Positions 1,253 to 39,821 of a stretch of 42,315 bases of DNA are shown in pieces. Positions within the stretch are counted from its first letter, which is position 1, and the number at the start of each line of letters is the position of its first letter. The notes beneath the pieces are model-generated. The model searched no databases and was not told where the DNA came from. It saw only the letters and a program-made list of their open reading frames with translations. Both the position numbers and the translations under genes were made by a program. Source of the DNA: Klebsormidium nitens (lineage: Eukaryota; Plantae; Klebsormidiophyceae); NCBI GenBank assembly GCA_000708835.1, contig DF237659.1, forward strand, positions 1 to 42,315. The letters run 5' to 3'.

Positions 1253-4200
1253 ATGGCTCTATCCTATGCCAGGGGGGTGGGCACCCCCCTAAATCTGGGC
1301 CAAGTGGGGCCTTTGTTAGGCAGCAGATCGTGGATAGATCCTCCACGGCCCTTCTTGTATCCACCATATGTGGCAAGAAGGGGCTTTATGGGGCGAAGAG
1401 CAGGAGACCTTGCCGATCTGGTGTCTCCAAGGCCCGCCTGCCGGTGTGCGGGTTTAGAAAGCATGTTAGGAAAGGAGCAAAGGCGGAAAGAGGTGCACAG
1501 TGTGCGCCCGAGGGCGGGGAAGAGGCTGAGCGAGGGTCAAAGACAAGGGGGCGTGCAGGAGAAGGAAGGAGACGGAGAACAAAGACACAGTATACCCCTG
1601 TGGAAGTCCTTCTTAGGAGTGACGGCAGGTTTGGCCCTCTGCACCAGTCTGCATGTGGGCCAAGCACATGCGCTTGAGTTAGATCAACCAGGGGTTGTAA
1701 CAGAGACCTCACTAGCAACTCAAATAGGGGTTGCAACAGAGTCCTCACTAGCAACAGAGACTCTCTTAGAAAGGAGATCGAATGTGACAGACGACCCCCT
1801 AGACAGCGATGTCACACTCCCAAGTGCAGGCATGCCAGTCCAGTTCACGGTCGACAGTCCTGGGGGCACAGACGCTCCTGTTTCAGGGGAGGCTCCCAAC
1901 CCTGTCCTTGACATCAGCGTAGAGAGCAGGAAGTCTGACGGGTCAGAGGGCGCATCTGGAGAGAGGAAGAGGCGGACAAGCAACGGGATCGCGGCCGCCG
2001 CGGCCGCTGTGGCGGGGGTGTCTTTAGTCGCCTCTGGAGGGTCTACGGCTGCGGCGGCAGGCGCAACTTCTGCCGCTGTTGCAACAGCCGGGGGGGCTGC
2101 GGCAGGGGCGACTACAGGGGGGGCTTTGTTGGCGGCGTCCACTCTTCCTGTCTCTCATGCGGTGGCTACAGCAGCCACTACAGCAGCCACTCTTCACGCT
2201 GCGGAAGCAGTTGGAGCGACTGTGGCTGCTTCTGTCCTAGCAGGGGGAACTGCCGCGGCCTCTGGTGCCGCCGCGCCCGCGGTGATGTCAGCGGCAGTTG
2301 GAGCAGGGGCCGTTGCGGCGGGGACGACGTCAGCGGTTGTTGCGGCGGGGCTCGCCTCAGCGGCAGCAGGCTCCGCAGGGGCAGCGTCAGTGGCTACTGG
2401 GGCGACGTCAGCGGTTGCGGGAGCGACATCTGCGGCATTGGGGGCTGCATCAGCGGTTGCAGGGGCAACTCCAGCGGTGACAGCAGCAGTGGTTGGGGCG
2501 ACGTCAGCAGTGGCAGGGGCGACGTCAGCAGTCGCGGCGACGACCTCCGCGGTGACGTCAGCAGCAGCAGCAACGACCTCAGCGGTGACATCAGCAGCAG
2601 CCGCGACAACCTCAGCGGTGACGTCAGCAGCGGCGGGCGCAGCCGCGAGCACCGCAGTCCCCTCCTCGGCGATCCTCGCGACCTCGCTCCCCGCGGCAGT
2701 CGCCAGCAAGGCCGTCGTTGCTTCTTCAGCGGGTGCGGTTTCCAGCACCGTCGCTTCGACCATCCCCGCCGTCGTGGCAAAGTCGGGGGCAAGTGCGGCC
2801 GCCACCTCAGCGCTGACGTCAGCGGGCGCGGTGTGCACCACCCCCGTGAGGGCGGTTGCTCACGCTGCCACGTCAGCGGTTTTGGAAGGGGGGGCCGCTG
2901 CCGTTACTGCGGCAGAGAGCGTTGCGGTCGCGCATTCTGCTGCGGTGTTGACTCAGTCGGGGCTTGCGTCGGCGATCGCGAGCTCGGCGCATCATTTTGT
3001 GGAGGGTGGCGTGGCGGGCGCAGTGGGGGCGACTGTTGTGTGCCCAATTGGTGAGAAGTGACGTTGAAGGGCATTGCAGTATTGAGTGCGGTTCTGCTCG
3101 CAAAGCTATGCATCTGCTGTTTTGTCGTTTACTGAGATTGCTGGGGAAGTTGTATTGTCTAAGAAGTACGGAATGGAACAAGGTCTGGTCAATTGCATTG
3201 TAATCCATCTTTGCCTGTAGGCCAGTCAGAGCACGCTTACTTCTGGTCAAGATGGAAAGTACATCAACGTTCATACAAAGGACTTTGTGGCTTTGAATTC
3301 AATTACTAACCTCGTCTTTCCAATCTTGCAGACGTTGTCAAGACCCGTATGCAAGGCCAGGAGACCAAGAAGGGGGAAAAGCCTAAGTACGCCAACCCGG
3401 CCGACTGCGTGGTTCAGATACTGAAGGAGGAGGGGCCCGGCGCATTCTTCTTGGGCCTCATCCCTCAGGTAATGAACCCTCCAAATGCATGGGCCCTTTG
3501 GTCCCTTGTATGTAATGACGGTTCAGAAATCCTGGTCAGTTAGCCCTTTCAACCTTGTCAGTGGACTGGTTTGCGTCCTGTTTGCGTCCTGATGCTTGTT
3601 GCCATGACAATTTCTAGCATGGGCGTTACTGTCCTGTAAGATCCGACTTCCATATTTGTAAAAGAGTCACCATACTAGATTGTTACATATAGAAGGAAAA
3701 ACTCTTTGTTCTTTAGTTAAGATTTGACTCCTAAAGCACTCCCAAGCGTCATCCACAACCCCATGGCAAGTTCGACACATTGTTTTCTAAGTATAAGTTT
3801 TGCAAACCATCATCCTCAATCCCCTAAGACTCGTATCCCTTGCCCCGCAGCTGCTTGGCGTCGCCCCTGAGAAGGCCATGAAGCTGACGGTGAACGACTT
3901 GCTCATGAGCGTTCTGGAAAGCTACATCCCGGGGGCTCGCCTCTGGACGCTGGAGCTCTTTGCCGGCAGCGGAGGAGGCCTAGCTCAGGTCGTCTTCACA
4001 AACCCGGTGAGTGACTCCTATCGGATTGTCAGAGGACTTGTTTGGTTGGTCATTCTTGTTCTGCCGCCATTGCTTGATCGAAGAAAGGCGCGGCTTTATT
4101 TTGATTTGTCTATCAGAAACGTCCGTTTGCCTCAGTGTGCTTTTTCTGCCCGATCTGGACAAGTGATAGCTTCTTGAAAATCCTTCAGGGTACCACCCCT

Positions 4201-5504: not shown

Positions 5505-6661
5505 CACCAGCCGGTCTGCAATTGTTCAAGTCGACTCGACATGCTTTTGCGCAGAGTCAGGATAGAAATTGTTACATACTCGCAGGTAGATAGTGGGTTG
5601 ATATCATTCTTTCGGGGCCTCTAGAAAAGAGGTACATAGAAAAGTGGGCGGGGAAGTTGATTGGTTAGCAGCCTGTCATTTGTACAGTGGGTTTTCGTCA
5701 GACTGGTGTGTACAACAAGAGATTGAGACAATTTCGAGAAAGGCACAGAAGTTCTTGCCACAACGTAGTGCTGGATTAGGTTTCGACGAGTAGTTCAAGT
5801 TTGCATAGTCCGAATGAGAAAGTTGTTAGAAAGGCATTTTGTTCATAATCTTGGTCAGATTAAATATGCAACCTTGTCATTTGTGATCATTTGTTAACAG
5901 GTTGAAGGCAGTGCTTCTTGGGCGCTTCCCAAATCGGGCAGGAACCTGGCTGTTGATTGGACATCCCGTATTTGACTCGCTGCAAACCTGCAAGGCATCC
6001 TGAGCGATATATATAACATGTGCGCATCAACATATTTGTTTCATGGAATTAGGGTTGCTGGCCGCCATGTTTGATCCCCAGTCAGCCAGCTCGGAAGTCA
6101 CATGCCAGCGTAACGTTCAAAAACGTACTCAGCAACATTTGCCAGCATCTGGTATATGCTGGCACTTGGCATCTGGCATCCATGCGTTAAACCACCACCC
6201 GCGATTTATAATCGGGCAAATTTAAAATGCTGACGTGGCATAACTTGCCAACGGTCGTCGAGACCGTGAAATTCAAACTGCGACCATGGGGCGCACCATT
6301 CTGAACACTGATCGAAAAGGGCGCTCCCGCCTGCAACTGCGGCATCAAATCTCCACCAAACTTGGCGGTGTCAAGCTTGTTCGCCAGGAACAGGCCCCGC
6401 TGGGACGCGCTCCTTTTTCCAGCTTCAAAAACCACCAAAAATAAGGCCAGGAAGCACAATAACGATGCTCTTACCTTATAGACGCTATTTTAGCTCGTTT
6501 TGAGGGCTGAAAAGACTGGCGCTGTCTTTTGAGGCCTGCATGTGGCGACTAAGCTTGGCACCGCCAGCAAACGGCATGATCTTGGCAGTCTAGAAGGTGC
6601 TAGGGAGCCATTTCTGCATGGTGCCAAAAGCTTGCGCCCCATGAGAGAACTTGAACTTCTC

Positions 6662-7368
6662 NNNNNNNNNNNNNNNNNNNNNNNNNNNNNNNNNNNNNNN
6701 NNNNNNNNNNNNNNNNNNNNNNNNNNNNNNNNNNNNNNNNNNNNNNNNNNNNNNNNNNNNNNNNNNNNNNNNNNNNNNNNNNNNNNNNNNNNNNNNNNNN
6801 NNNNNNNNNNNNNNNNNNNNNNNNNNNNNNNNNNNNNNNNNNNNNNNNNNNNNNNNNNNNNNNNNNNNNNNNNNNNNNNNNNNNNNNNNNNNNNNNNNNN
6901 NNNNNNNNNNNNNNNNNNNNNNNNNNNNNNNNNNNNNNNNNNNNNNNNNNNNNNNNNNNNNNNNNNNNNNNNNNNNNNNNNNNNNNNNNNNNNNNNNNNN
7001 NNNNNNNNNNNNNNNNNNNNNNNNNNNNNNNNNNNNNNNNNNNNNNNNNNNNNNNNNNNNNNNNNNNNNNNNNNNNNNNNNNNNNNNNNNNNNNNNNNNN
7101 NNNNNNNNNNNNNNNNNNNNNNNNNNNNNNNNNNNNNNNNNNNNNNNNNNNNNNNNNNNNNNNNNNNNNNNNNNNNNNNNNNNNNNNNNNNNNNNNNNNN
7201 NNNNNNNNNNNNNNNNNNNNNNNNNNNNNNNNNNNNNNNNNNNNNNNNNNNNNNNNNNNNNNNNNNNNNNNNNNNNNNNNNNNNNNNNNNNNNNNNNNNN
7301 NNNNNNNNNNNNNNNNNNNNNNNNNNNNNNNNNNNNNNNNNNNNNNNNNNNNNNNNNNNNNNNNNNNA
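6662..7368. other. Assembly gap (707 N) flanked by an exact 55-nt direct duplication
   Basis: 6607-6661 is identical to 7369-7423. Confidence 0.95.
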
Positions 7369-7407
7369 GCCATTTCTGCATGGTGCCAAAAGCTTGCGCC
7401 CCATGAG

Positions 7408-7436
7408 AGAACTTGAACTTCTCAAGTTCAAGTTCT
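7408..7436. repeat. Perfect 13-bp-stem hairpin (agaacttgaactt-ctc-aagttcaagttct)
   Basis: Reverse-complement arms read directly from the sequence. Confidence 0.9.
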
Positions 7437-8175
7437 GAGGAGCGCCGGCATCCCGGCGGCATTTATAGGTTGGGGGTGGTGGTTTAAGGCGGCTCTAAGA
7501 TTGATCCTCAACATCTACATAAGATCGAATATAGCTGCATACACAGTCACATAATATGAGATGCCGCATGATGACCTTGCTCATGGCGGCTGTACACCTA
7601 TACTTACCCCATGTGCGCCCAACTCCTGCACCCGCGGCCCAAAATCATGAAGCATATACGCTTTCAACATCTACCGTCATGTTCAAAATAGCCAGCCAAT
7701 CAGAAGTATACCTACATGTAAGATGTATGACCTGTAGTGTATACCGTCTTCGCGCAGAATTAGAAAGCAACATCCAAAAGTTCGAAATACGTATAGATTG
7801 CATCACGCCTCTCATTTTTCAAAGTGTGCACATGTAATCAGGGTGAGGACCGAGGAAGCATGCAATTTCCTCCGTTCAAGACTGCTCGTTCAATGATTTC
7901 ATTTCACAACCGACCGTTTTACCGGTACGGGTACAAGTTCAATTGAGGGCAATGTAAGTGTGGAGCTGACGATATGCACAGGCCAGCAGATCCATCACGA
8001 CGACCATCTTTGAACGCAGCAACCCCCATCTGGTCAGAGCTAGGCTAAGCTAAACTGCTTCGGACTGAGCTCCCGAAACCCATATCAACAGCAACCTACT
8101 AGCTAGTCCAAAGCAGAGAAAGGAAACCAGCCCCACGTGTCCAAGCTTCCGCGTCTAGCATCCCGTTTTTCCGCT

Positions 8176-11100
8176 CTACTTCGCTGCGTACCAATTCTTG
8201 GCGTGCTTCGCATCGACCGCCAACGCCACTTTCAGAATGTTCTCGCCATCGAATGGATGCGCCATGGCATGAACCACACGGCTCAAGGCCTCGTCCGCGC
8301 TCTCCTCCGGCCCTTCCAGGATCATCTCGTCGTGCACTTGCAGCAAAAGCCGCCACCCTAGTTCCGCCAGCCGGGCGTCGCGGGACAGCTCCAGCATGGC
8401 CAGCATCGCCACGTCAGCAGCGCTCCCCTGTGAGCACGCGAAAGAGGTCAGAAAAGCCGAAATAAGAACGCGGCTGCGTTGCAGAATCTGCCGCCTTTTA
8501 CCCTTTTCAAAGAATGCTCTTCGCAAACTGAAAAGTGACCAAGACTTTCTCCCTCTTCGGCAATTGAAAGCCTTTCCCCTACTAAACTGCCTGAACCAGG
8601 CAGTCGCCTGGTCTATCGAACCGATTACCACAGCTTCTGCGCGAGTTCATCCCCTTCTACCGAGAACGAAATACAAGATCCGGACATCCTCGCTCTTTTT
8701 GACACCTTTTTCTACTGCGCTCTGCATCCCAGCTGCTTTCCAAATGAGTCTCGGCGACCGCCCTACCTGCACGGGGGTGTTGATGGCTGCCCGCTCCATG
8801 TGGCTCTCCAGCAGCCGGTTCCTGCTGTTGATGTCGGGCAAGCGCCGCCGCCGCCCGAGCAGCGTCGGGACGTACCCCGTCTTCTTGGCCTCCTCGATGC
8901 GCGCCTTCTGCCACCGCTTCACCTCCTGCCGCGCCGCGTACCACAGCTTCACCGTCTCCTGCGCCTCCTCCAACGTCACCTGGAGAGACACGACACTTGG
9001 ATGACGTCATGACTGCGTTGATGTGAACTCATGGGGAGGTTTAAGTAGAGGAAAGAGATTCAACCTTCACCTCCTGGGCACGCCGCGTACCACAGGTTCA
9101 CCGTCTTCTCTGCGGCTCCTCCAGCGTCATTTCGAGGGTTTGGCACTCGGATGACGTCACGGTTACGTCAAAATGAATGTCGTGGGGAGGTTCCAAACGA
9201 GTACAAGAGTTCAAACAAAACCTGCTCTCATGGCGGACCGCAGATTTACCTCTGTCCTGCGCCTCCTATTACGTCACTCACCGACTGAAGTTTGTGTTTT
9301 CAACACAAACAGGATTGATTGAATCATGGAGAGGACTGAAGCTACGCTTCATAGTGCAACCAAGTAGGGTCGGGCAAGAATCACGCTCACGACGTCCTGA
9401 CCTGGCTTGCGACAAGCTCTCATTGTCTAACTTAAAATCTGAGACCTGGAAGGAACTTCCAATGCCACGAGCACGCCGCCAACCTCGACCCAAGAGCCAA
9501 CCCTCTGCTGACGTCACGAAAGAGACCGGCCACCCAAGAGCCAAACCCTGCTGACTTCATGGACAAATCCCACCACAACCCGCCCACCTTCCAGTCCTTG
9601 CTCAGCCCCGCCGCCGTTTTCCCATACGCGATGGAGAAGTTGAGCATCTTGGCCTTGCGGCGCTCCGCCCCGAAGACGTCCTTGAGCATCGGCGCGGGCG
9701 CGGGAACGGTGCCGTCTTTTGAGTCCCACTCGAGGAGGACCTCGCCGCGCTCTACGGCTTCCCGGACGTGCGCGTACATGTTGACGGCTGTGCGCGAGTG
9801 GAAGTCGCCACCCGCCTCGAAAGCGTCTTTCATGCTCTGGCAGTCGGCCAGGTGGGCGAGCAGGCGTAGCTCCAACTGGGGGTGAGAGGGGGGGTTCAGT
9901 ATCGTGGGGGAGGGGGGGTGACAGGATAGCGGGATAACTATTGAATGGACACGGACAATATTCCGTCGCTTCCAACGCGTTTTCCATTCTCTGGCAGGTG
10001 GCAATTTGCGCAGAATGAGAGTAGGGGGGTCAGACTGAAAATAGCATGGGGGGGTAACATCAAACAGAGTTCGGGTTGACATCCGAGTGGAGACAGAAAA
10101 GTTAATCCGCTGAGTGACCCAAACAAGAGTCTGTGACCTCCGGCGCCACCGACTAGTAGTGGGCCAGCTTTGCGAGTCGCTGCAACCTCAAGTGGGGCCG
10201 AGAGGGGACGGTCCGACTGCAAGCAAGCAGTTCTTCTGCAGGAACTTGTAACAGCCGACTTGAAAACTCCTGAGTTGACTAGTTCCTCGAACTCTAGAGC
10301 AACCTACTTCAAACGGAGGAATATACACAAACTAATCGGTGGGCCTTACCTGACCATAATCAGCCACGATGAGCGTGTTGCCTGGGGATGCCACAAAGGC
10401 CTGTCGAATCTTGTAGCGGTCTTTCTCGAGGGCGGGCTGGTTCTGCAGGCGGAAAGGGAAATGGCTACAGATGTACTCGTATCGAAACCCGACAAGCAAC
10501 GACAAAAGTTGGAGATAATGAGGCAATCAAAATCAGTTGTTTCGCCAAACATTCCTTTGATCGGCTAGGTGAGATAAATTCCAAAAGGAAGTGTGTACCA
10601 GCTTGGGTGCAACGTAAGCTGGAACTGCATCAAAGAAGGAAAGCAAGTAATCAACCTATCAAACTAGTCTGGACAGACGACATTGATGCAGCGGATTGGG
10701 CCAGAAGAACAAAACCACAACAAAAGTTTTAACATCTTGCCTGCAGGTTGGGCTTCCTGGCGCTGAGCCGGCCCGTCTCGGTGTTGATGTTGAGCGAGCA
10801 GTGCACCCGCTTGTCCGGACCCAGCATCTGGTCTCCTTGGAGCGGCTGAATGAACCCCGACAGCAGCGTGCTAATCGCGGAAACTTCGATCAGCGCCGCG
10901 ATTGCGTGGCACGCTGCCTTGCCTTGAACGCCCCCTCCGAAGGCGGCGTATGCGGTGCCGTACTTGGAGACGTCGTCCTTTGGAGCGTCCTGCAGACAGC
11001 GGGGCAATTAACATAACCATACCGTCTAATGGTGATAGATCTACGGAACTGAAAGCACTGAAAATCGTTGACTGACCAACCTAAAACCCTAAGGACAAAA

Positions 11101-14100: not shown

Positions 14101-17100
14101 TGTTAGCGACTCGAGTGAGTAGCCCGCGCCGGCCTTTTTATCGCGGGCGGAATCGTAGAGGCGCGCCATGTGCATGGTGTCCGCGTGGAGGCCCCGCGCG
14201 TCGACGCCGTGGTTGTGGAGGATGTGGCGGTCGAAGCTGTAGTTGTGCCACACCTGGGGGAGAGCGAAAAAAATGCTTGTGGGACGTCTGACGCCTCTGC
14301 TGAACGGACGTGGTAGACGGGAAGTTCGACGGGAAGGAGAGCGAAGGAGATCTCCGAAAGCGAACGACGCTTATGATGAAGCCGGAAGTGAAGGAATTTC
14401 ATTGTGCGTATTCAAATTAGGAAAAGGCTCTGGAACGTACAAATCGATGCCGATCACTTGCTGGCCTCGCATTCGGCGTCAATTGCGAAAAATTTGCTAT
14501 TTGGGAGGCGGTACTGGCGCTTTACCATTTCCTGCATCTATTGCTGTAATTCCATATTCCAAAAGGAGTGAAGGGCTAAAAGTCAAATGTAAGGGGAGAA
14601 ACTTATTCCGCATCTCCCTGCTTCTTTTATCTACCGTCGTGATAGATAGTTGGCACAAACTGACAAAAAAACCGAGTCCAGAACCGCAAAAAGACTCCTG
14701 AAATGTTGAAGCAGAAACTTTTCCTCACAGAAGGCACATTCCCCAGGATCTGACGATATGAAAGCTTCGACTCCTTGAATAGCAACAGATTGGAGCAGTA
14801 CATCGGGTGCATTTCTCAGATCCAACGTGTAGCCCACCTTCTTGATGGTCGGATCTTCAAAGAAGCTCTTGAACGGCGCCAGCAGCTCCTGTCCCCCCCC
14901 CAGCAGGTCCACGAACACGCAACTATTCCCGGCCCCCCAGTCGACGTCCGGCCCCGCATAGAACGTGAAGCACGTCATCATGCCATGACCCACGGGGCTC
15001 TCCTTCTTGACGTCAATCTCCATCACCTCCGTGTCGCACGCAAACACGCGCGCGCGGTGTGACGTCAGCGCCAGCTCAGCAACCCGCTCCGCCTCGGCGA
15101 GGTCGCTCACCAGAAGGACCGCCTCGTCCCGCGCCGCGAGCGCCGCGGCGACCGCCGCTTTGGCTTCGGCTTCCGTCGGGACGGGAAGCGGTTCCGGAGG
15201 CGGAGCGTCTGGCTCCGACTTCAGGGCAGCCTTCGCGCGCGGCTTGCGCATTGCGGGGGCTCTCCGCGGTCCTGACCCCGTCTTCTCGGACCCCGTCTTG
15301 GAGAGTCGTTCGCCGAAGACCGTGCTGCTCCGCAGGAGAGGCGACATGCTTTGCGCCGGGGTCAGGGTCTGCGCAAACGGCGCAGAGGACCCGTTTCCGG
15401 GAGTCCGTGGCTGTGCACTGAGACCACCTCCGAGAGTGTGAAGGTCCGCCGCTGCTTCGATTGGCTGAGAATTTACCCCTAGAGGAACGTCCGCCACCGC
15501 GAACCCGGCATCTGAAGCACGCTCAGGGGGGTGGAGAGCGCCGGTGCCATTTCCGAGTACTCCAACAAACTGCAATTGGACCTCCAGACCCCCCTCTGCG
15601 GTCAGCACCTCGCCCACCGGCAGCCCAGGAACCCCCTGCTGTCCCAACAGCCTAGTGCTGTCGACCCTTTCTCCTTCCTCTGGCTGCAGTCTGCCCTCCT
15701 GGATCCGCCCCGCAGCCGGCATCTGCCCACTTGACACTGCTCCCACAACCGGCTTAACAGCCTCCTCGGCTGGCTTCGAAACCCTGGCCGTCTTCCTACC
15801 CACCCCTCTAGTTCTCGTTGCGGCCCCGAGACCGTCTCCTGGTGTCAAAGCCTCCGCCGCTTCCCCCTCCGCAATCTCAACCGTCGCCTCTGGCGTGGAC
15901 GTCGCCCGCCAACTCCTTGTCGGCCGCTTCTGCGACACGGTGGCGCCAGCCCCGCTTGCAGACCCCAAGGCCTTCGTCTCTCCATTCTTTTCCTCCTCAG
16001 CAAACCGCAACCCTTTAGGCCGGTTCACTTTGGGCTTCTCTTTGACAATGCCCCTGTCTTTGCCTCCAAGCTCTCCATTTGCAGTGCTGGTCTCCGGGGC
16101 GATCGGTTCACCTGGCCCGTCCTGTGCCAAGACAGCATCCTGCACCTTTGGATCCCTGGCCGCTGGGACTTTAGGTGATACGGGAGAAACAGCCTTCGCA
16201 GCCCCTGCTTTTACCCTAGCTCCATTGGTCAGGGCAGCGTCCCCAGGACTCTCTGCTTCCAAACCTTTCGCTTCCACTTTGACAGCAGACTCGACACCTG
16301 CACCCTCTACCTCCGTGGCCAGAGTTTTACTGCGCCGTGGCTTTCTTGGCTTAAACGGCGGTCTCTTCTTCCCTTCGTCGCAAACGGCGCTTCGCTTTGG
16401 CTCCAAATGAGTCTCCGCTTCCCCACCCCAAGCTTCAACCAAAGTGGCCCCTTGAGGGGGGCCCTGCACTGCGCTGCTTGAGACCTCCTTGTTTGCCTCA
16501 GGAATGGGGCTCAAAGGTACGTTTGGAGGTCCATGCATGGGGCGACTTTCAGCGGACTGCTCACGTTGACGAGCAATCTGCGGCGAGTTGCGCGCTCTGT
16601 GCGCCTGTTCCTCCACAAATTCCTCCTCAAGGAGCTTCGAGCTAGCATCAGTTCGCTGCAAGGAAGCCCAGAGCTTCAAGTTCTCGGGCGACTCGTATGT
16701 TGCTCCAGGTATAACCCTCCCAAACTCGGTATGGGCACCGGTTTGCACCGCTGGATTGATGGCTATTTTCACGCTTCCTGGAGGCCTCGCCTTTTGCCAG
16801 GGCTCCTGATCCCTGTCCCAATCGCCTCCCCCCCTCCAGTATGACGCCCGTTCTGTAATAGGCTGGGCTTCCTGCAAGCATGGCTTGCTGCTGGAGGGGC
16901 GGAAGGCGGGCAGGCTCCGATTGGCGCTCCCAGCAGTGCCGGGGAGTGTCTGAGCAGGGGAAGAACCCAGAGCCAGGGGGCCCCACAGCAGGGAGACACT
17001 CTGGACGAGAAGAGAGCTGCAGAAAGAAAGTGGAAGCAGGGTCATGCATCTTCAAAACCTCCTACGCTGTGCACAGGATTTCCTGCTCGCAACAAACATA

Positions 17101-21300: not shown

Positions 21301-21500
21301 GAAAACATCTCACAACTGGAGACACGAAACGTTTCATTCCCGACCATTGCCTTTCTCCGAAGGTACCTCGATATCACCCCTTAAAACCGTGGCTTTCATG
21401 ATCTTTGTTAATTGCTGCTCCCGAACATATCCTAAAATGGAGACACGAAGCGTTTCAGATCCTAGCATTGCCTTTCTTCGAAGGTTTCTCGATATCCAAA
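21301..21500. repeat. Intronic ~80-nt duplication
   Basis: gaaaacatctcacaactggagacacgaaacgtttca...cattgcctttctccgaaggt..ctcgatatc at about 21301 and again at about 21423. Confidence 0.75.
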
Positions 21501-21689
21501 ACCGCGTGTTACGTACAGCACGTGTCTAATTATCTGAAACCGCGTGTTCCGTGCAGCACGTGTCTGGAGCTCGGCGCGATTGCTGCGGACGTCGGGCTTC
21601 CTCCCGGCGTGTTGAACATCGTCACCGGGCTGGGGCCAACGGCGGGCGCGCCGCTGGCAGAGCACCCAGGAGTCGACAAGGTACGATTG

Positions 21690-21915
21690 TGTGCTTGCCA
21701 CGTTCGTTGGCGTTTGGATTTGCGGTTCCTTCTCAAAAGAAAAGCTCTCGACTTTGCCACGTTCGTTGCCTTTTGGATTTGCGGTTCTTCTTCAAAAGAA
21801 AATCTCTTGTGCTTGCCAGGTTCGTTGGCTTCTGGATTTGCCGTTCCTTCTCAAAAGAGATTCTCTGGTGCTTGTCCCCGTTCGTTGGTTTTCTGATTTG
21901 CGGTTCCTTCTCAGA
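21690..21915. repeat. Intronic tandem repeat, ~60-nt unit x4
   Basis: cgttcgttgg...ggatttgcggttccttctcaaaaga recurs four times. Confidence 0.85.
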
Positions 21916-30095: not shown

Positions 30096-33000
30096 CTAAA
30101 CGTTCACAGTCTGATTGTTGTCACCGAAAGTCATGTCCCTGAACAGAGGCGGCGCGATAATCGTTTTCTGCACCTTGCTCGTAGACGCCCCGAAGATGTC
30201 GCTGAAGAGAACGCGGTCGCCCATGGCCAGCGCGGTCAGCGCGGTCGCGCGGCAGCCGGCTGCGCGGTAAACGAGCTGGTAGCCAGCAACTCTCTGCCCG
30301 CGGGTGATTGCGCTCTTCTTGTCCACCATTTTCTGGATGACGTCAGCCGCCTGCATACCAGGTATTGATAAGCACTCTTGGCATGTCATTCAAAAAGCTG
30401 CGTCGTTAACTTGAGCTGGATCGGCGGGCGTCCTACCGAAATGCAGGAAGCCGGATGCAGAGATGACTGACTGTGACCTCTGATGAGAGTCTCCTCACGA
30501 AGGCATTGAAGCAAGCGTTCTCAGACCAGCCACAAAGATTGGTATCAACCGTCTGCAAAGTTTGTCATCAGCGCAATCAACAGAAACCTATCAAAAACTT
30601 CAGGTTGCGAAAGATCCGGACGAAAGTAGATAGGTTTTGGCGCCTCTCAACCGAAATGACGTGATACGTTTGATGGAACGGGAAAGTAGGGCGTGACCGA
30701 AAGCAGCATATGAGTTTCTGTACACCAAAGTCAGCAAACGGCAGAGACTCTTGGAGGTCAAAAAGCAAGGTCCTCAATTAAAAGAAACCAAAAAAGCCGC
30801 TCGGCGTTCGCCCACCTGAGAGTCGGCAGCGGCCGCGACTGCCTCTGTCTTCGCCTGTTGCACCAAGTCGGTGGTAGCTTTGCCATCTAGGTCTCGCGTC
30901 GAGTTCAGCACACTCTGAGCGGCAGCCTGGAAAGCACCCTGGGCGGCGCCGATAGCCAACGGGGTAACCGTCTGGAGTTTGAAAGAGAGCCCAGTTCAGA
31001 AAGGGATTGAGGTGCATAGTCGTGGTCTTGAGCGAGTCGAAAAAGGCGGTCAAGGTTTGCTAACGTTTTCCCCGCAGAAAGAAGAAGACAGCGTGTTGAG
31101 GCTTCCTGGTTCAAAGCCGAGACAACAGCCAATCCCTATTGTTTCTGGGGCATGAACCCTCTTTCAAGAAGCTTATTCTAAGGGCAGCAAAGCTCACACG
31201 AAGCGAGCGAAGGCGCCAAAGCCTGTGGGCAAGCAGTACACTGCAAGATCTACCTTGAGTATTTGCGAAGCCCTTACCATACACGATCTGACCGGGAGAA
31301 GACTGTATAATTCAGTGTCGAAAACTCACCTTCAGCATGTCGGAGAAGAAGCCTCGCTTGTCACCGACCGGCACTTTGCCGGCGCTCAGTGCGACAGACG
31401 GACTTGTGGGTTTGGCGACGTTCACCAGCGCGTCAAACAGGCCGATGTCGCCGGCACCAAGCGCGACGACAGCCGCAGCGTCAAGTCCGTTCTGTCCGTT
31501 GGAGGCGAGTACGGACTTGTACAGAGAAACCTTGTCCACCGCTGTTGCCCCGCTGAACAGGTCGCTGACCTTGGACTTTGTCTGCACCGAAAGCAACGAA
31601 AAAGAGTTAGTTTTGAGAAGAGTCGCTTCCTTGAAGGAAGGCTTCGCAATTGATATCTTCCAGTAAACGTTCGTCCTTGGATCAGTCGGTCCATACTAGT
31701 CACGTGCCGTATTCTTTCGGCATTTGTTTGAAAAGATACTTTTGTAGCTCTTGGAAACGCATGCCTTCCTTCCAATAAGGCCTCCTCATTGAAGAGAGCC
31801 TCGAGTGTTTGAAACACGAACAGACGGAGTGAAGAGATTGTTGGTGGAATCAGCTTTGAACCGCAGAGTCTTCACGAACTAGAGAGGGCGCAAGAAGACC
31901 GCTCAACAGGCCACCCACCTGCTCGTCTTTCACCATTGATAGGGCCACCTGGCGGGCTCCCTGTGTCGCTTCATCTCCCAGGGATCGCTCTCCAAGCGCC
32001 TTCACGTAGTCGCTGACGTGTGAGGTGCCAAGAGTGACGCCGTTGAGGATGTTCTCAAGCGCGGCCGCGCCTGGCCCGCCTAAGACGGCGGTCAGCTGGT
32101 CGCGCGCGGCGGGTTCAAGGTCGCGCGACATGCCGGACAGGGCGCCGTTCATTGCTCCCAAGAGCGCTCCCTTTCCCACGCTCAGGAGGCTGTCGAACAA
32201 GCCCCGGTTGTTGGCCGCGAGGGCTGTGAGAGCGGTGACTGAGGGGCCTGCCCGCGCGTAGAGAGCGCAGTAGGCGGCTGTGTCGTTGGCGCCGGTGGAG
32301 ATCAGGTCGGTTGCCGCTTTGACCGCCTGCAAGCGGAGGTTTGAGGTTTACGGTTTGAGGTTCGAGGAGGTTCAAGTAGAGAGGCGGAGGGGGTTTTGCG
32401 CTGCTCCGCATCCTCCACTAAGAAGAGTCCTGCGGCCGGCTACGCGCTCGAGATGAGATGGCTGTCTGATGGCATTAGGGCGGCCCGTCGACGGCTCGGC
32501 ATGACCAAAATAGAGAGCGGTGAATCAATCTTTCACACACCCTTTCAAGACGACGATGGCGGTGGCACGAGGATCAACTTCAGTGAGGGCTGCGCTTGAG
32601 CAGTGAGGGCTGCGCTTGAGCAATCTGCTTGCTATTGCTGTCTATCACTTCAGTTTCGGTAGGGACGAGCGTGCGGGCGTTTCGACAACGAAACTTTCGT
32701 AGCTAACAGGGGCGGAAGCGGAGGGTTCGGATTCAACAGGGGAACAAAAGTAAAGACATCTACTTTTGTCAAAGTGGCTTACCTGGCTGTCGGTAACTGT
32801 CTTCCGGATGACGTCAAGGGCATGCATCTTGAGGTCGTCGCTGCTCAGCTGGCTGCGCTTCGAGCTCAACAACGCGAGGGCAGTGTTGAGGACCGGCTCC
32901 TCCTGGCGCCGGCTGCCTGCGACCGGTAGGTCACGGCTGAGCGCGCTGTTGACCGCGCCGTTGACCGCGCCAATCGCAATCGGCTTCAGGAAGTCGAAGA

Positions 33001-35487
33001 CGTCACCAAAAAGGCTGCGGTCCATTCCGTCGACAACGAGAGCGCGGGCTGGGCCGCCAATTGCGGCTGTGAGAGCAATGTTGGCGACAGGGACGAGGAT
33101 GCTGAGCACGCTGTCAAAGAAGCCGCGGTCGCCGGCCGCAAGCGCGGTCAAGGCCGCGACCTTGGGACCCGCAGTGTCGACTATAGTGTGGTACAGCTGG
33201 GTGCGCCGGGGCGCCCCCATAAGGAGCGAGTTGTCGACCAGCTGCTGGACGGTGTCGGAGGCCTGAAAGGGTTGAAAAAGGCGATGGAGCGGGCGTGCAA
33301 GAATTGGAGTGATGCCTGAGGAGTACCTCACTTGGTTTGTGCTTGCTAGCGAAGTCAATGCTTACCTACGTTCATTCCAAAAAAGTAACTGAAAGGAGGA
33401 CTTACAAGGAATGAGCCCTTGCATTTGCAAAGCCAAAGCAATGCAAGCCACCAAGCTAATATACACAAGTCGGCTGAGCTGAAGTTGGCCCCCAACTACT
33501 ACCGTCTAATCTACTCGGGCCGCACTTTCCGGTAGGTGACTTGGGTGCAGCTTTTTGCATGAGAACACAGGCAAAATTCTTGTTATACCATGCCCAACTG
33601 GCAGAAGGAAGATAGACTCACCCCGGGCGTGTCGCCAGCCACCTTCTGCACTACTCGCAGCGCCTGCGCGCGCACAGCTGGATCGCCCAGGTCGCGCGCC
33701 CCGAAGGTGGAGATGGCGTTGGTCAGGAGCCCGTCGTACAAGCCGTTGCCGGTATGCGCACTCAGGTCCCGAGAGGCGAAAAGGCTCAGACCCGCCCCCA
33801 CAATGTCCCCGAAGAGATCACGGTTGTAGGGATCGTCGGTAGACAGGTCGCGGCCGCCAAATGCACCATTGACAGCTCCCTGCAAACAGATCTTCGTCTA
33901 TCGATGCTTCTCCCGGGGATGATTGGATGATGATTCTGTCAGAGAAATCGAAGCTGGTACCACGTATGTGGGCACCAGTTCACGAGAAGCTGGCATAATC
34001 TGCTCAGCAATGATGAGCAGAGAAGTCATGTCCTGTTGAAGAACACAGTGAGCTGCTTTCATCAGAACAACCAACTTTCGTTGATTACTTCGTTCATTTG
34101 TTGATCGTACGTGCCAAGCCAAGCCGTTGGTTCCAAGCGGAAATATTGGGCACAGCAGATTTCCATCACTCTCAATTCCTTAATTCCCTTCAACTTACGG
34201 AGAGAGCGGCTAGGCCGATGTTCTTCAGAGAGTCGAAAAGCCCGCGGTCGCCCGCCGCCAGCGCGACGAGCGCGGCCGCCTTGGGTCCCGCACGATTGTA
34301 AACGAGCTTGTAGCCGCGACGCTTGGCATCGTAGGAAAGGGTGCCTCCCGCAGGGTTGGCGAGCTGCTGTGCCGCTGAAATCACCTGACGTGACAAGAAG
34401 ATGGACAAGTCTAAGGGACACTCTCACAGATCCACTCAGGGAAGTGAACAAGTGAAGGATACTGCAAATGTTGCCCTTCGCGAGTAATCTGCCGCAACCA
34501 TCATTTATGCACCTGAAAGCCAACGTGGATGGGCTTGCAAAGTGCTGAAAAGGACAGTACATAGTCAGAGACAATGACGGAGCGTAATGCTTAGAAGTAT
34601 TGGACCTTGATCTCTTGACATTATTGACACTTGCCAAGAGCCTACTGCGTTCGGACATTCGGCTCAAAAGTATCCTACTTCAGCAACAGCGGCTAAGAAG
34701 GATGAGGTTTTCCTTTGAATCACTTGCGCTCAAACCTCCACTTTTTGCAACTGTAAGTTTGCAACAGGCCTGAGTAGAAATAGGTACCCAAGTCATCGTC
34801 CTAACGACAAAAATTGCACTAGCAAATGCTTTGTTGAAAGAAGTTTTCATGCTTGGTTGTGATTGTCACAACACTCACCTCAGGATCGGCGACGAAGTTC
34901 TGAACAATGGCAAGGGCCTGCTCTTTGACTCCCGTTTTAGGACCAGCCATATCGCGAGTCGCCGCATCCAAAATCTGGATTGCCGTTCCCAGAAGACCGT
35001 CAAAGAGGCCGCGCGGCCGCCCGCCGCCACCCACCACGCTTCGAATTCCGATGGCACCTTGGAGCGCACCAGCGGCCATGCCGGCCGCGCCTGAGCCCAC
35101 ACCTCCGAGGGCGCCCTGGAGCGCGCCAGCGGCCATTGGCTTGACCGTGCTCCAGAGGTCGTCGAAGAAGCCACGCTCGTCTGCCGGCATGCGCGTGAGC
35201 GCGCCCAGCGCGTCATTGATGACGTCAGCAAGTCCGCTCTGGACGTCCGCCGCCAAGCCCGATGGAACAAGGGGATCAGCGACCCAGACGGCAGCAGAAC
35301 GGAGTTGGGTGTGCTCAGGGAGAAGCGTAAGGGCGTCGTCGAAGAGCGCGCAGTCGCCGGCAGCAAGCGCGGTAAGTGCGGTGACGGTGGGACCGGCCAG
35401 GGTGTTGAGGGCCTGATACTCAGCCGCCTTCTGGGCGGAGTGAAGGTTTCCCACGGAACTGGCAAGGGCGCTCACGGCGGACTTCAC
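30096..35487 (-). repeat. Six protein repeat modules (Y..L...AGP....L.ALAAGDRG[L/F]FD core followed by R-delimited Gly/Ala-rich amphipathic segments)
   Basis: Cores: LAGPTVTALTALAAGDCALFDD, RAGPKAAALVALAAGDRGLFDS, TAGPKVAALTALAAGDRGFFDS, RAGPSVTALTALAANNRGLFDS, GLDAAAVVALGAGDIGLFDA, AAGCRATALTALAMGDRVLFSD. Confidence 0.85.
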
Positions 35488-38360
35488 CTGTGCGGTGGAG
35501 TGAAGACGGGTCAACACGTCATCTGGTGGCATTAAGGAGTGCCCGGCAAAGCGCGCGTGTACAAATGTAGACCTTTTACTCCTTGAGGTCAAAACTTCAA
35601 AAAACACTCAGGACAGCACGCCCCCGAAATGATCATACTGCTCAAGTACGTGTTTAAAGCTTTGAAAGAGGCGAACAAGAGCGGCTGACAAACTTTGTGG
35701 CCGAATGCATTGGCACGCGATTTGGAGGCGCCTGCATAGCTCCTGAAATCATGAGAGTCTTACCTTCTGAGTCACGGTGTGTTGGTGATTTGCGCCAGCG
35801 CCCACTTCTTGTTCACAGCAGACTCCAAATCACCGGTCGCAGGAAGGCCAGGCAACTTCAAGAGAAGGCTTGTCAGACGCCCCAGGCCCGGCGGTGGCAC
35901 CGCCATATCCCGTGTCTTTGATGGTGTAAAGGGAGCCAGGAAGGGAGTCTGCACCCGGTCGCTCATGCAGTTCACGTTCGGGATTTGAGGCCGGCCGTTG
36001 GCTTGGAGGTCAGCCAGGATAAGCTTCTTCAAGCCCGCAATCCCGAGGGTCCTGGCTTTAGGGGCCTCTCCGTAAAGGAAGTAGCTGAAGGCGCCGTAGG
36101 CGTTGAACTCCTGTGCAGGCTCCTCAAAGCGGCAGGCCGAGAGCACAGTCGGGGAATCCTGCAGTGGAGAGCGACCGGGATTGTCGCTTGATTGTAATTC
36201 TGTCACAGATGATTAATCCTTTGTGCTTAGCACGATTGAGTAGGAAAACGACCAAGTTAGCCAGGTGAAAAGCTAGCCACTCGTTCACAACCAACCAACC
36301 GTGCGTGTTGCCTGCAGTCACTTCGTGCACATCTTTCTAAACCTTAATCAGGCGGCCCAAATCCATAACCTTAATTACCTGATTGCTGGAAGTCACGGTG
36401 AAAAGGTTGCTGATAGTCGGGGCTGCAGTGGGTGCGAGGTCTCGGGCAGCGCTGTGGGCCTTCATTGCCCCGTGTTCGATGAAAGGGTTGGGGTTGGGAA
36501 GGTATCGAATCACGGGTGCAGAGACCTGGGTGCTGGGCAGGTCACGGGTGGCTGCAAAAGTGCGGACAGAGTCTTCATGTTGACACAACCGCAACGGTGC
36601 TTACTAAGTTGGATGCAATTACAGGTTAGCCTCAAGGGCATTGTCGAAACAGCACATGGGCAAAGGTCCAACTGCACAAAGAAGTCCTTCTCAAAAGACT
36701 ACAGCGTACATATCTTCTCGTCAATTGGAAGTTGCTTTTGCTAACTAATCCAACAAGCGACACGGGCAACATGCTCAGACTATGCTAGCGTCGCTTGTAG
36801 TGCTACCTAGCTTTCATCACACATTCTCAGGACGCAACCGACGTGGAGTCTCCACCCTAGCTCAAACTCTGAGGTCATTAAGGAGGACTTGCGGCACCCA
36901 CCTTTTGCGCCAGAGTGGCAGCAGTCCAGGATGAGGTACACGCTGACGCCCTTGGACAGGCTATCAAAAGCTCCCTTGAATTCGGTGTCCAACAAGCAGT
37001 TGTTGAAGACACCGGTCTTGCTGTCAATCTCGATGTCTGAAGGAACCAGGATGGCAGTCTTGTCGCTCACAAGGGGTTACTGCAAAAGACATCAATTTAC
37101 GCTGTTTCGAAGTCGTTCGGAACGTTGATACAAGGGGTAACAACGACCTACTCTCCGAGACACATGGCCAGCTTCAAAGCAAGCATGCTACGAGATTGTC
37201 TGAACTCTTTGTGCGCTGTACACAAACAAAGTCAAGGTCTTCATTTACATGGAAGAATCGACCAATACATGTGGCTGCACATGGCTGTTGTGGCCCCTTC
37301 TGACTTACATGCCTAAAAGTGTCTATCTATTGGAGAGTCAAAAATGGTGAACACACCCTGGCAAACAAAGGGCAACCAACGAGGCAAATAGCACGAGACT
37401 GGCGTGAAAAGGGCCGGAGATAGAGCCGGCATCAGTCTGACGATGAGAACCGGTTCCTATAACCAAGCAGCAAACGATTATTGAAGGGGCCCATGATCAC
37501 CTGAGCCCCATGGCCACTGTAATGAAACACGAGCAAGTCCCCGGCCTTTGCCCCGGTGACCAATCTTTCAGGGCCTTCAAGATGTTGGTCTTCGTTGGCA
37601 GGGTGTCCTTGGAGTACAGCGTGGACTGGGGGTCGTCAACCAACGTCTGCAGACAATCAACCACTTGCTTTTAGTCATTCTGGAACCTGCCAGTGCCTTT
37701 CAGTTACGCAAAGTTATCAGGAAGGGCAACAACACACAATCTTCCATTTCCTAGCCTTACTGAGTAGGTGAGCGCACTGCCGCGACAGCTGGACGCAAGT
37801 CAGAATTCTCTAGATTAAGAAGTGGCCCTGCTTGTTTGAATAGGACAAGGGGAGGACAAGCTGCCAGCTAATAATATGCTCATGTGTTGAGAAACTGAAC
37901 ATCTGCAAACCACATCACTGCAAATGAGGTTGCTTTTATTCACGAGCCCTTGTATTCTCAGCTCAGCACAATTCTTCTTCTGAAGCGATCATTAAAAGAC
38001 CCCGGATTCAACGGTCCGCAAAAGCATCCTACGTCTTGACTGATCATGGAGAACGCAACTTAGCTTATAATCAGATTCAACCTGACGTGATATGATTCAA
38101 GGATTACCCTTTTGCATTAGTCTCCTCTAAGTTTAAATGAGAAATTTCAGCAAGAAAGGGAAGCCCATGTAGCTTACCTTGATGTTACTGGTGTCGAAGC
38201 CGTATGATTGCACGAGTGTAGTCTTGGCAAGGACAACGTCGTTCACGCAGCCGCTCAGTGGGGGCACATTTGCCGTGCCCTGGTAGTTGCAGCCCACGAG
38301 GAGAGCCGCCTTCTTCATCCCGGGAAGGGCATTGGGGGGAGCAATCGAGGAATTAGCCAT
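30096..38360 (-). CDS. Metacaspase (peptidase C14) fused to a long C-terminal repeat polyprotein; 13 exons, ~1225 aa if three frame lesions are repaired (possible pseudogene)
   Basis: Exons on the minus strand: 38360-38178, 37646-37501, 37079-36902, 36551-36379, 36158-35764, 35487-34879, 34384-34199, 33879-33622, 33262-32783, 32326-31919, 31581-31330, 30971-30816, 30350-30096. Motifs: KKAALLVGCNY..LSGCVND, PTKTNILKAL, FHYSGHG (His), ILDCCHSG (Cys), and p10 VLSACRFEE..GAFSYFL. The tail exons are all phase 0 and repeat AGP....L.ALAAGDRGLFD. The 3' end is uncertain. Confidence 0.75.
32581..32622. repeat. Perfect 20-nt tandem duplication in an intron
   Basis: cagtgagggctgcgcttgag x2. Confidence 0.9.
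35900..38360 (-). other. Caspase-fold (metacaspase) p20 + p10 domain
   Basis: His-Cys dyad motifs HYSGHG and DCCHSG are present; no N-terminal signal peptide or prodomain is visible. Confidence 0.88.
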
Positions 38361-39821
38361 GGAGGAAGCTGGGAAGGGCCTGATAGAATGCAGGCACTGC
38401 TTGTCAAATGCAGAAAGAGTGAGAGGACGGTTGGAGAAAGGTGCGGGGCCTTGAGCCTGGGGAGTTTGCGAAGGATTGCGAATGCTGTTGGGAGCTCGAT
38501 TGCAAAAGGAGTCTTTGATGGTGCGCAAGTTTTGGAGATCAGCAGCCGCTTTTATAGCCTGCGGCTGAGCTCGTTTCAATTTGCCAAGTCCACTAGGACT
38601 TCGAGTCGGCATCATTCATTGCGTGAACTCTGAAGGCCTTGCTTGGGGACCAGATCACCCACGGAAAGGACTTTGCCGGAAGGTGCTCTACCTCCGGCCC
38701 GGGGCTTGCCCCGGCCGACGTACCGTGCCGGGGTGCCAGGCGCGCCAACATGATTAAAGTAGCGCTGAGTGCACCTCTCGACAGCTGGGGCCCCGGGGCG
38801 TTACGATGGTTCCCCGACCTGCCGCCCCGGGGAGCTTAAGAGCTGTACTGCCGCCCCCATCTGGCACTCTGCCAGCATCCCTTGAAAATCTCCGCTGCGA
38901 TCAGTACCGTACTCGGTACTGGATCACTAAATGCTTCTTGACAAGTTGAAAGTTCTTGTTTGACTATCAAAGCATGTCGGTGCATTATGGCTCTCGAGCT
39001 GCCGCCTGGGAAGCTAGTAAAAGCAAATATCTTCAGCGTGCGGAGTTATTTCCTGTACCTAGCTGTACCTAGCTGTGCCGTACGCTACCTTATACCGGTA
39101 CCAGCCGCCCTGCAAAATGTCTTTAGTTGTAGGACTGTGTTAGTCCTGCGAAAATTTGAAGGTAACATGGACTCCGGCTTGTGAATCGTATTGTATTTTC
39201 CAGTGTTACCAGTTGCAATCGACCCTCGCGAGTCGCCAGACGCCGGATTCCTGGACGTTTGGAAGTACCGGCCGGACAGCTGGGAAATTCCACCTATTAG
39301 ATAGTCTCGTTTGGAATCAATTTGCGCCATGTGGACCCCATGTGGAGTACGGCATCATGTCATACCACCAGCAGTCTGATGCTTGCAGTCCCTGCGCTAT
39401 GCCTGGCAGTACGTCGACGGTACGTTTGTACTGGCGTTCAAAGCAGTACCTAGTAACTAGTCATGCAGACTAGGTACTGCCAGTACTGCCCACCTAATAC
39501 CTATTATAGAGTAGTTAGTACTAACACGCATGCGAAAGTGGTGGCACAACAATGAATTTTGCACTTAAATTACCTAAGACTTAGGTCATTGCATCTGCTG
39601 TTGACATCAGCACCTGCACCTGACTTCCATGTGCATAATGGATCTCAATCGAGACGCAGAGCTGGTGCAGCGGAGGAGTGCAGTGAAACTGCCGCACGTA
39701 CTGGCCAGCCTGGCCGGGCGGTACCTACTTTGCAAGGTACTGTGCTGGATCCTGCACGTACTGCGACTGTGCTTCCGTATGACGTCGCTCTAGCCTCTGA
39801 GTCAGCTCTCTTCACTGACTC

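Follow-up and report, generated by a model that had tools for sequence, protein, structure and literature searches.

Scaffold DF237659.1 of the Klebsormidium nitens assembly GCA_000708835.1 was analysed over its whole length of 42,315 bp (the window). The exact coding sequence of a public protein, P0001 or KFL_007100040 (1157 amino acids (aa)), occupies positions 30096-38360 of the minus strand, the strand to which all positions of this gene refer below; its database name is 'hypothetical protein KFL_007100040 [Klebsormidium nitens]'. Mapped back onto the strand, the protein falls into 13 exons, of which the first five encode a protease of the metacaspase type and the other eight a long C-terminal tail built of repeated modules. 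The parts listed in an earlier note, made from the letters of this DNA, were all found on that strand; an exon for the linker between the p20 and p10 parts of the protease (36551-36379) and a half-module of the tail within the p10 exon (35927-35764) are additional to them.

The protease half is clearly a C14 domain, and in sequence it is most like the type II metacaspases of Arabidopsis. Pfam places Peptidase_C14 (PF00656) on residues 17-255 (E = 1.8e-12), with the match ending at profile position 192 of 233, and PADLOC gives a 'caspase' match (5e-8). The best relatives of solved structure are AtMC9 (1.9e-14) and AtMC4 (1.3e-12), ahead of the Trypanosoma and yeast type I enzymes. Exon 1 (38360-38178) holds the annotated start codon and the first p20 strand (KKAALLVGCNY, SGCVND), and is recognized both by Pfam on the exon alone (Peptidase_C14, E = 7.4e-5) and by tblastn with P0005, an unrelated metacaspase. 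HYSGHG lies at 37524-37507 in exon 2 (37646-37501, 146 nucleotides (nt)). Exon 3, which extends over 37079-36902 and is shortened to 37065-36902 in the public model, carries the catalytic Cys motif DCCHSG (36926-36909); tblastn detects this exon, and the motif aligns with the Cys motifs of P0005, AtMC9 and AtMC4. The 173-nt linker exon, identified from the sequence and the P0001 mapping, contains two R-D-L motifs (ATR/DLPS and AAR/DLAP). Exon 5 ends at 35955 in the public model (36158-35955); its p10 part (36158-35928) comprises LSACRFEEPAQE, with LSAC from 36143 onward, GAFSYF at 36095-36078 and the C-terminal PQIPN..VQTPFLAPF. This part appears as a weak second domain in Protein Data Bank (PDB) alignments to AtMC9, in which LSACRFEEPAQE…GAFSYF and SGCQADETSAD…YGAFS align only as a non-significant second stretch (0.5-0.8 bits).

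As in type II enzymes, there is no N-terminal prodomain, the annotated start lying 14 residues before the first p20 strand. The extended p20-p10 linker of that type is absent, since about 65 residues, encoded mostly by exon 36551-36379, separate DCCHSG from LSAC. Inspection found no hydrophobic N-terminal signal, in agreement with the claim of the earlier note that a signal peptide is lacking. Upstream, the exon-1 frame stays open for 85 codons beyond the annotated start, to an ATG at 38615 (38361-38615, minus strand). This Pro/Gln-rich extension has no Pfam match and, if translated, would place a prodomain-like N-terminal part on the protease.

The caspase-fold domain had been described as complete in that note, and all of the motifs quoted for it are in the DNA, but no single reading completes it. 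In exon 2, the first 28 codons (TLVDD…PTKTNILKALKD) run in one frame and the next 21 (LVTGAKAGDLLVFHYSGHGAQ) in a neighbouring frame, the T at 37563 being common to the last codon of the PTKTNILKALKD frame and the first codon of the LVTGAKAGDLLVFHYSGHGAQ frame; relative to the remainder of the exon, the frame of FHYSGHG is offset by one nucleotide. Tblastn with P0005 matched the two halves of exon 2 in two frames, and for the 21-aa His piece a Pfam match appears in its own frame only. In P0001 the residues opposite the FHYSGHG of AtMC9 and AtMC4 are unrelated and the catalytic His is absent. A tiny intron as the cause of the frame change was ruled out, because the two frames overlap on the same bases. 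Exon 3 must begin in phase 0, given an ancestral exon 2 of 49 codons, and in this homology-required frame its strong acceptor (ttttgcag, AG at 37081-37080) is followed at once by a TAA at 37079-37077. The public model uses instead a weaker AG 14 nt further on (exon start 37065), which compensates for the 146-nt exon 2. Finally, the p10 frame meets a TGA at 35774-35772. No continuous reading of the present sequence contains both the His and the Cys motif. With the catalytic His motif out of frame, the copy as assembled cannot encode an active protease, and, because the present sequence is broken at three sites, the 1157-aa public product is a predictor's path through weaker splice sites.

The tail is unquestionably coding sequence. 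It consists of 867 aa in eight exons, all joined by phase-0 introns with good splice sites, and an independent enumeration of splice sites gave the identical eight exons. Its frame is free of stops over 2598 nt (866 codons), against 21-29 stops in the other frames, and the introns have 33-39 stops per frame; the GC content at third codon positions (GC3) is 0.75, compared with an intron GC of 0.48. The earlier note had read a tail of about 870 aa with six homologous modules, and six modules, 31-39% identical to module 2, are what we found. Module 1 is exon A (35487-34879), module 2 (34384-33622) exons B (34384-34199) and C (33879-33622), module 3 exon D (33262-32783) and module 4 exon E (32326-31919). 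Exons F (31581-31330) and G (30971-30816) form the more degenerate module 5 (31581-30816), and exon H (30350-30096) a truncated module 6 with the stop codon. Seven columns are invariant over the six modules (Y25, G33, A38, A41, L42, F50 and R82). Every module boundary falls at a phase-0 intron, which indicates exon duplication. The duplications are old (synonymous substitutions per site (dS) of 0.65-1.8), and over a 34-codon core the ratio of non-synonymous to synonymous rates (dN/dS) is 0.24-0.44 between modules 1-4, at a dS above 1, and a looser 0.6-1.0 in modules 5 and 6.

AlphaFold models of modules 3 and 2 are both all-helical. The first 60 or so residues are reproducible, forming three short helices and then a long helix that starts at R-G-F/L-F-D (predicted local distance difference test (pLDDT) 74-88); the Arg sits in a loop of three residues that precedes the G-Phi-F-D helix. 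The remainder of the module is of low confidence and the acidic spacers are coil (pLDDT 32-44). The earlier note had allowed for a tail that matches a known folded domain, and had recognized the architecture from no described family. The tail has no match in Pfam, NCBIfam or PADLOC and nothing above 0.74 in the ESM Atlas feature search, and its models have none in Foldseek searches of the AFDB clusters and the PDB (E above 0.6) or in the Atlas shape search (template modelling (TM) score at most 0.41). It is thus an orphan in family and fold searches, in keeping with the claim of an unrecognized architecture. Word-index protein searches with a tail piece, the whole protein and the protease part found no relatives of the tail; the long C14 proteins that they returned have other architectures, namely a double metacaspase (P0005) and bacterial proteins combining C14 with PF24096 (P0006 and P0007). 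A profile search among 1.84 billion protein representatives found no C14-plus-repeat protein other than the gene's own product, and in the literature we found no paper connecting Klebsormidium metacaspases with such a tail.

The exon that encodes p10 also contains part of a tail module. After p10, 54 codons of the same exon form a half-module (module 0; 35927-35764). It aligns with five modules (A, C, D, E and G), in each case with the C-terminal half; its sequence TR/DMA…GDLESAVNKKWALAQITN aligns best with module 3 (…DDLKMHALDVIRKTVTDSQ) and is followed by a frame break and TVTQK. This TVTQK, the expected half-module ending, stands directly before the donor at 35764 in a frame that is shifted relative to p10, and its frame and phase fit the acceptor at 35487. 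Because a half-module lies within the p10 exon, protease and tail are one open reading frame (ORF) by ancestry. The donor (aag|GTAAGA, exon end 35764) has the best consensus nearby and lies 8 nt after the in-frame TGA. From the sequence, the ancestral junction was probably 35764|35487, and the present TGA looks like the product of a third frame lesion. The exon 5-exon 6 junction of the earlier note (35764/35487) is thus probably the original one, but it sits behind the TGA at 35774-35772 and needs frame repair; likewise, the single precursor that the note had proposed holds for one gene and one ancestral ORF, but not for the present, frame-broken copy. Two weaker donors give in-frame fusions without repair. 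One, at 35955 (cgg|GTGCAG), is joined to 35487 in the public model and deletes the last p10 strand, VQTPFLAPF; the other, at 35834 (ccg|GTGATT), can be joined to 35522. An in-frame ATG at 35531-35529, upstream of tail exon A in the same open frame, is a possible start of a tail-only product.

RNA libraries of the same species hold almost nothing from the locus. Four of them yielded five contigs over 31720-37700, each 231-261 nt long and of depth 2-4, and no splice joints (Logan contigs lose rare transcripts), and the exon 5-exon 6 junction, for which an RNA check had been suggested, gains no support from them. One of the five contigs is purely exonic (31934-32167, in exon E), and each of the remaining four reads unspliced through an exon-intron border or a possible splice site; the contig at 35648-35886 is colinear over the stop and both downstream donors. 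This pattern fits a background of DNA or pre-mRNA and speaks neither for nor against any junction. Expression is at most trace in the sampled libraries.

Metacaspases cleave after Arg or Lys. In the tail, 17 of the 41 Arg residues stand in R-[GDS]-[LFMI] (2.0 expected; maximum 8 in 5000 shuffles) and R-G-[LFI]-F occurs 6 times (0.02 expected), counts that show conservation and not repeated invention, as the modules are paralogues and their motifs not independent events. R82 is invariant in all six modules. Two more R-D-L motifs stand between p20 and p10, in the linker at which type II metacaspases process themselves. The repeated units are bounded by a motif of the protease's predicted cleavage type, 17 times in the tail and twice in the linker, and nowhere else in the window does the tail motif occur. 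Predicted cuts after Arg give two classes of piece. The first are hydrophobic and Gly/Ala-rich, 17-54 aa long, and begin with G-[LF]-F-D or [SD]-L-F-G-D; they exceed the mean hydrophobicity of the tail by 1-2 standard deviations, carry a net charge of roughly -1 to +2 and in several cases bear a Pro near position 12. The second are short and acidic, and begin with D-L.

Behind the gene's own product (7.9e-192), the profile search returned only three marginal matches, of which P0004 is the sole detectable, and weak, relative of the tail. This 1012-aa protein (L002:86-3124) comes from a contig of run ERR4329566 that is intron-less and transcript-like, with a GC3 of 0.54 against 0.75 in the K. 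nitens tail, and so belongs to another organism; no paper was found to mention the run accession. Whereas KFL_007100040 begins with a protease, P0004 begins with a nucleotidyltransferase with a PolyA_pol head, for which the nearest clusters in the Atlas consist of bacterial and phage PolyA_pol proteins. Its 390-aa tail comprises seven R|G-[LFI]-F-[DSG]…P… units with acidic spacers between them, and the unit R|G-[LF]-F-[DS]…P is shared by the two proteins. BLASTP aligns the tails with 48 bits (E = 5e-10), and a hidden Markov model (HMM) of the 25-aa unit, built only from Klebsormidium units, scores 38.6 bits on P0004 against at most 13.7 in 4000 composition-matched shuffles. The hhalign comparison of the module profile with the P0004 tail gives a probability of only 33%, the relation resting on the short unit and not on the whole module, and P0004 lacks the AGPxVxALTALAAGD sub-domain. 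Arg precedes the G-Phi-F units in 6 of 8 cases in the K. nitens tail and in 7 of 7 in P0004, at an overall identity of about 31%. What recurs on a different enzyme in a different organism is thus the unit R|G-Phi-F-D…P rather than the module. The other two matches were rejected as relatives of the tail: P0002 is a bacterial-type perfect repeat, treated as spurious by composition and pattern, and P0003 was not counted, having an E of 4e-4 with the module profile but 9.5 bits with the unit HMM. P0003 (458 aa, from an ENA contig) is secreted-looking, with RR/KR-bounded repeats (…RRDIIGTLEGVANGA…KERDL…), and is probably an unrelated, convertase-processed repeat protein.

With a confidence that is about evenly balanced, we read KFL_007100040 as a real, lineage-restricted fusion of a metacaspase to this tail, at a locus that is probably decaying in the sequenced strain and with a processing that is predicted rather than demonstrated. 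In this reading, the gene joins a prodomain-less, type-II-like metacaspase to 6.5 tandem, orphan, all-helical modules of about 85-200 aa each, copies made when exons flanked by phase-0 introns were duplicated. A module opens with a helical sub-domain that is small and predicted with confidence (..Y..L…AGPxVxALTALAAGD) and continues with a series of Arg-bounded, hydrophobic, often Pro-kinked G-[LF]-F-[DS] helices that alternate with short acidic D-L spacers. In an intact copy, the Arg/Lys-specific protease would first cut its own R|DL linker, and would then cut the tail at R| sites, in cis or in trans, freeing hydrophobic, Gly/Ala-rich helices that may act on membranes. On the sequence, Arg-specific processing of the tail is plausible: the Arg sites would be cleavage sites by analogy with the Arg/Lys specificity of the metacaspase family. 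That the freed helices may act on membranes is suggested by a pattern that they share with lytic peptides which start with Gly and are kinked by Pro, such as aurein 1.2 (PMC6695355).

By its frame disruptions relative to homologues (at 37563, at the TAA behind the exon-3 acceptor, and at the frame break and TGA before 35764) the copy probably belongs among decaying genes, and an active protease in the same ORF as its substrate, the trait of a self-processing polyprotein, is absent from the present sequence. We think it quite likely that the sequence at the lesions is correct and that they are real in the strain. A fraction of 1.00 of the 301 31-mers sampled from 34800-37700 is present in one DNA run; this stretch includes all three lesion sites, where three indel errors would be expected to cost roughly 3% of words.

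Several points weigh against this account of a decaying fusion with a processed tail. The DNA run may be the assembly's own data, which makes the 31-mer result support and not proof, and the original assembly, we presume, may stem from an indel-prone platform. The three lesions are confined to the protease half (1.2 kb) and spare the tail (2.6 kb), a distribution with a chance of about 0.03 under uniform decay, and the lesion-free tail suggests that it is still under selection or is used alone, for example from the ATG at 35531. Through the in-frame fusions at weaker splice sites, a His-less fusion protein may really be made. Against a string of free peptides, the first 60 or so residues of each modelled module form a moderately confident helical sub-domain, and R-G-Phi-F-D, which starts a helix in both models, could be merely a helix cap.

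The main functional rival, which we regard as possible but on the unlikely side, is that the tail remains joined to the protease as a structural domain of helical repeats, for example a membrane-binding part or a scaffold, and is not a substrate, with R-G-[LF]-F-D and R-D-L as helix-cap or loop motifs. It accords with the all-helical models, their reproducible four-helix N-terminal part (pLDDT 74-88) and the helix that starts at each G-Phi-F-D, and with the position of the most conserved columns (Y25, G33, A38, A41 and L42), which lie in the folded part and not at the Arg sites. Non-substrate C-terminal domains are, moreover, common on prokaryotic caspase homologues (PMC5756287). A known repeat fold was, however, matched neither by Foldseek nor by the Atlas at the limits given above, and the second half of each module is of low confidence; Arg has been kept before the G-Phi-F units in both proteins despite their low overall identity, and hydrophobic pieces alternating with short acidic spacers are typical of multi-copy peptide precursors.

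The locus might instead make two products, a metacaspase ending at the TGA at 35774-35772 and a tail protein started at the ATG at 35531-35529 from a bicistronic mRNA or an internal promoter, and cut, if at all, in trans by its own or another metacaspase. The stop belongs to the p10 frame, the tail's own frame has no stop from 35607 on and offers an ATG 44 nt upstream of the annotated acceptor, an RNA-library contig is colinear over 35886-35648, spanning the stop and both candidate donors, and the lesions all spare the tail. We nevertheless hold this arrangement to be improbable. Only about 240 nt separate stop and ATG, and inspection found no AATAAA or TGTAA between them. What precedes the stop is a half-module of the tail type, and TVTQK, in the other frame, abuts the best donor as all other module ends do, which makes the stop look secondary. 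The colinear contig is equally likely to be DNA or pre-mRNA, since contigs over other introns are unspliced too.

Also improbable in our view is an intact and expressed one-gene device, an active metacaspase with its own substrate tail that Ca2+ would set to cutting itself into peptides, the lesions being assembly errors or bypassed by splicing. In its favour, the 1157 aa of the public model are read from an uninterrupted ORF, the tail ORF has stayed perfectly intact and bears the marks of coding sequence, a half-module within the p10 exon shows the fusion to be a true one, and the enriched Arg motif occurs in the autoprocessing linker too. Against it, every continuous ORF in the present sequence lacks FHYSGHG, the weak acceptor 37065 and the weak donor 35955 are needed exactly at the would-be frame breaks (and donor 35955 removes the last p10 strand), the lesion-covering 31-mers are all present in the DNA run and the four libraries contain no spliced RNA.

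One known system for comparison is damage signalling by AtMC4 and PROPEP1, in which an Arg-specific metacaspase frees a peptide from a cytosolic precursor without a signal peptide. Our gene likewise combines a putatively Arg-specific metacaspase with a precursor lacking a signal peptide, and release from the tail would be the counterpart. PROPEP1, however, is a separate, small substrate with one cleavage site, whereas the candidate substrate here is attached, repeated, hydrophobic and unrelated in sequence. Caspases that act on gasdermins, and bacterial and fungal gasdermins with neighbouring proteases, show a caspase-family protease freeing a membrane-damaging part on a danger signal. Only this concept would be shared, membrane activity being putative in the present case; there is no gasdermin fold or sequence, and protease and cargo are in one polypeptide.

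Among metacaspases, type I enzymes have an N-terminal prodomain, type II enzymes have no N-terminal motif and an extended linker, and type III enzymes have p10 before p20, while additional C-terminal domains are found among p20-only homologues only in prokaryotic orthocaspases (PMC5756287). With p20 and a probable p10, a short linker and an orphan tail, KFL_007100040 fits none of these types. It resembles AtMC4 and AtMC9 in starting at the p20 strand without a prodomain, in the DCCHSG Cys motif and the probable p10 part, and in having linker Arg residues where type II enzymes self-activate (PMC5756287); it differs from them in its linker of only about 65 aa, its C-terminal tail of about 870 aa and its out-of-frame His motif. 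Like cyanobacterial orthocaspases, many of which have lost the His-Cys dyad (PMC5756287), it has a C14 p20 followed by a long C-terminal extension. Orthocaspases lack p10, though, and their extensions are known domains (WD40, GUN4, FGE-sulfatase), in contrast to the eukaryotic p20 and p10 and the orphan tail found here.

The tail also recalls the frog aurein-type precursors and fungal, KEX2-processed repeat proteins such as Ece1/candidalysin, with which it shares tandem hydrophobic or amphipathic segments of 19-36 aa, bounded by basic residues and set apart by acidic spacers; its segments begin with G-L-F-D, as does aurein 1.2 (PMC6695355), and many have a mid-helix Pro. Those precursors are secreted, bear a signal peptide and are cut by a Golgi convertase at dibasic sites, unlike the present tail, which has no signal peptide, single-Arg sites, near-neutral rather than cationic pieces and a folded helical sub-domain in each module. 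The likeness is, by this comparison, one of pattern and not of homology. Judged on sequence, the novelty lies in the orphan tail on a metacaspase and does not amount to a demonstrated system of a new kind. A wider proposal would make the Arg-preceded, often Pro-kinked G-[LF]-F-[DS] helices a new eukaryotic class of cytosolic, protease-released, membrane-active peptides, carried as C-terminal cargo on a metacaspase and a PolyA_pol-type enzyme, and would have Ca2+ or damage trigger self-cutting, in intact copies, of a one-polypeptide executioner of cell death or defence that would work like the caspase-gasdermin pair without being related to it, with a Klebsormidium family of fused and neighbouring protease-cargo pairs; we consider it a long shot.

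Elsewhere in the window, a 602-aa ORF at 1253-3061 (plus strand), in a stretch of 69% GC, is of extreme Ala/Thr/Ser/Gly/Val low complexity (runs of ATSAV/AAGA-type repeats) and has no Pfam match. An AT-rich island at 6000-8000 (GC 0.30-0.33, against about 0.52 elsewhere) has ORFs of 250-313 aa in several frames on both strands (6490-7462), and may be a low-complexity or repeat element. A gene for a DNA polymerase of family A has exons at 9432-10082 and 14631-17045 (both minus strand): its downstream ORF has a DNA_pol_A match (Pfam, E = 2.3e-13), and its upstream ORF of 804 aa has an exonuclease-like end; from its sequence the gene looks like an organellar, Pol I-type gene with a long low-complexity N terminus. 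An ORF at 21405-21896 (plus strand) matches aldehyde dehydrogenase (Aldedh, E = 2.8e-8) and is probably one exon of a neighbouring gene. Rfam found nothing over the whole window.

For practical use, the public model of 1157 aa should not be taken for an active enzyme, since the gene through which it was threaded is broken. A new small sequence unit, R|G-Phi-F-D…P, can be defined from this locus, and it recurs on an unrelated enzyme. Substrates of metacaspases, and their outputs in death or defence, are known in very few cases, and a metacaspase of a streptophyte alga with p10 and a long orphan tail stands outside the three classified architectures. Should intact relatives prove to process the tail, the gene would represent the first metacaspase with its own multi-copy cargo, and it would offer, if the reading is true, a testable link from Ca2+-activated proteolysis to membrane damage in a lineage ancestral to land plants.

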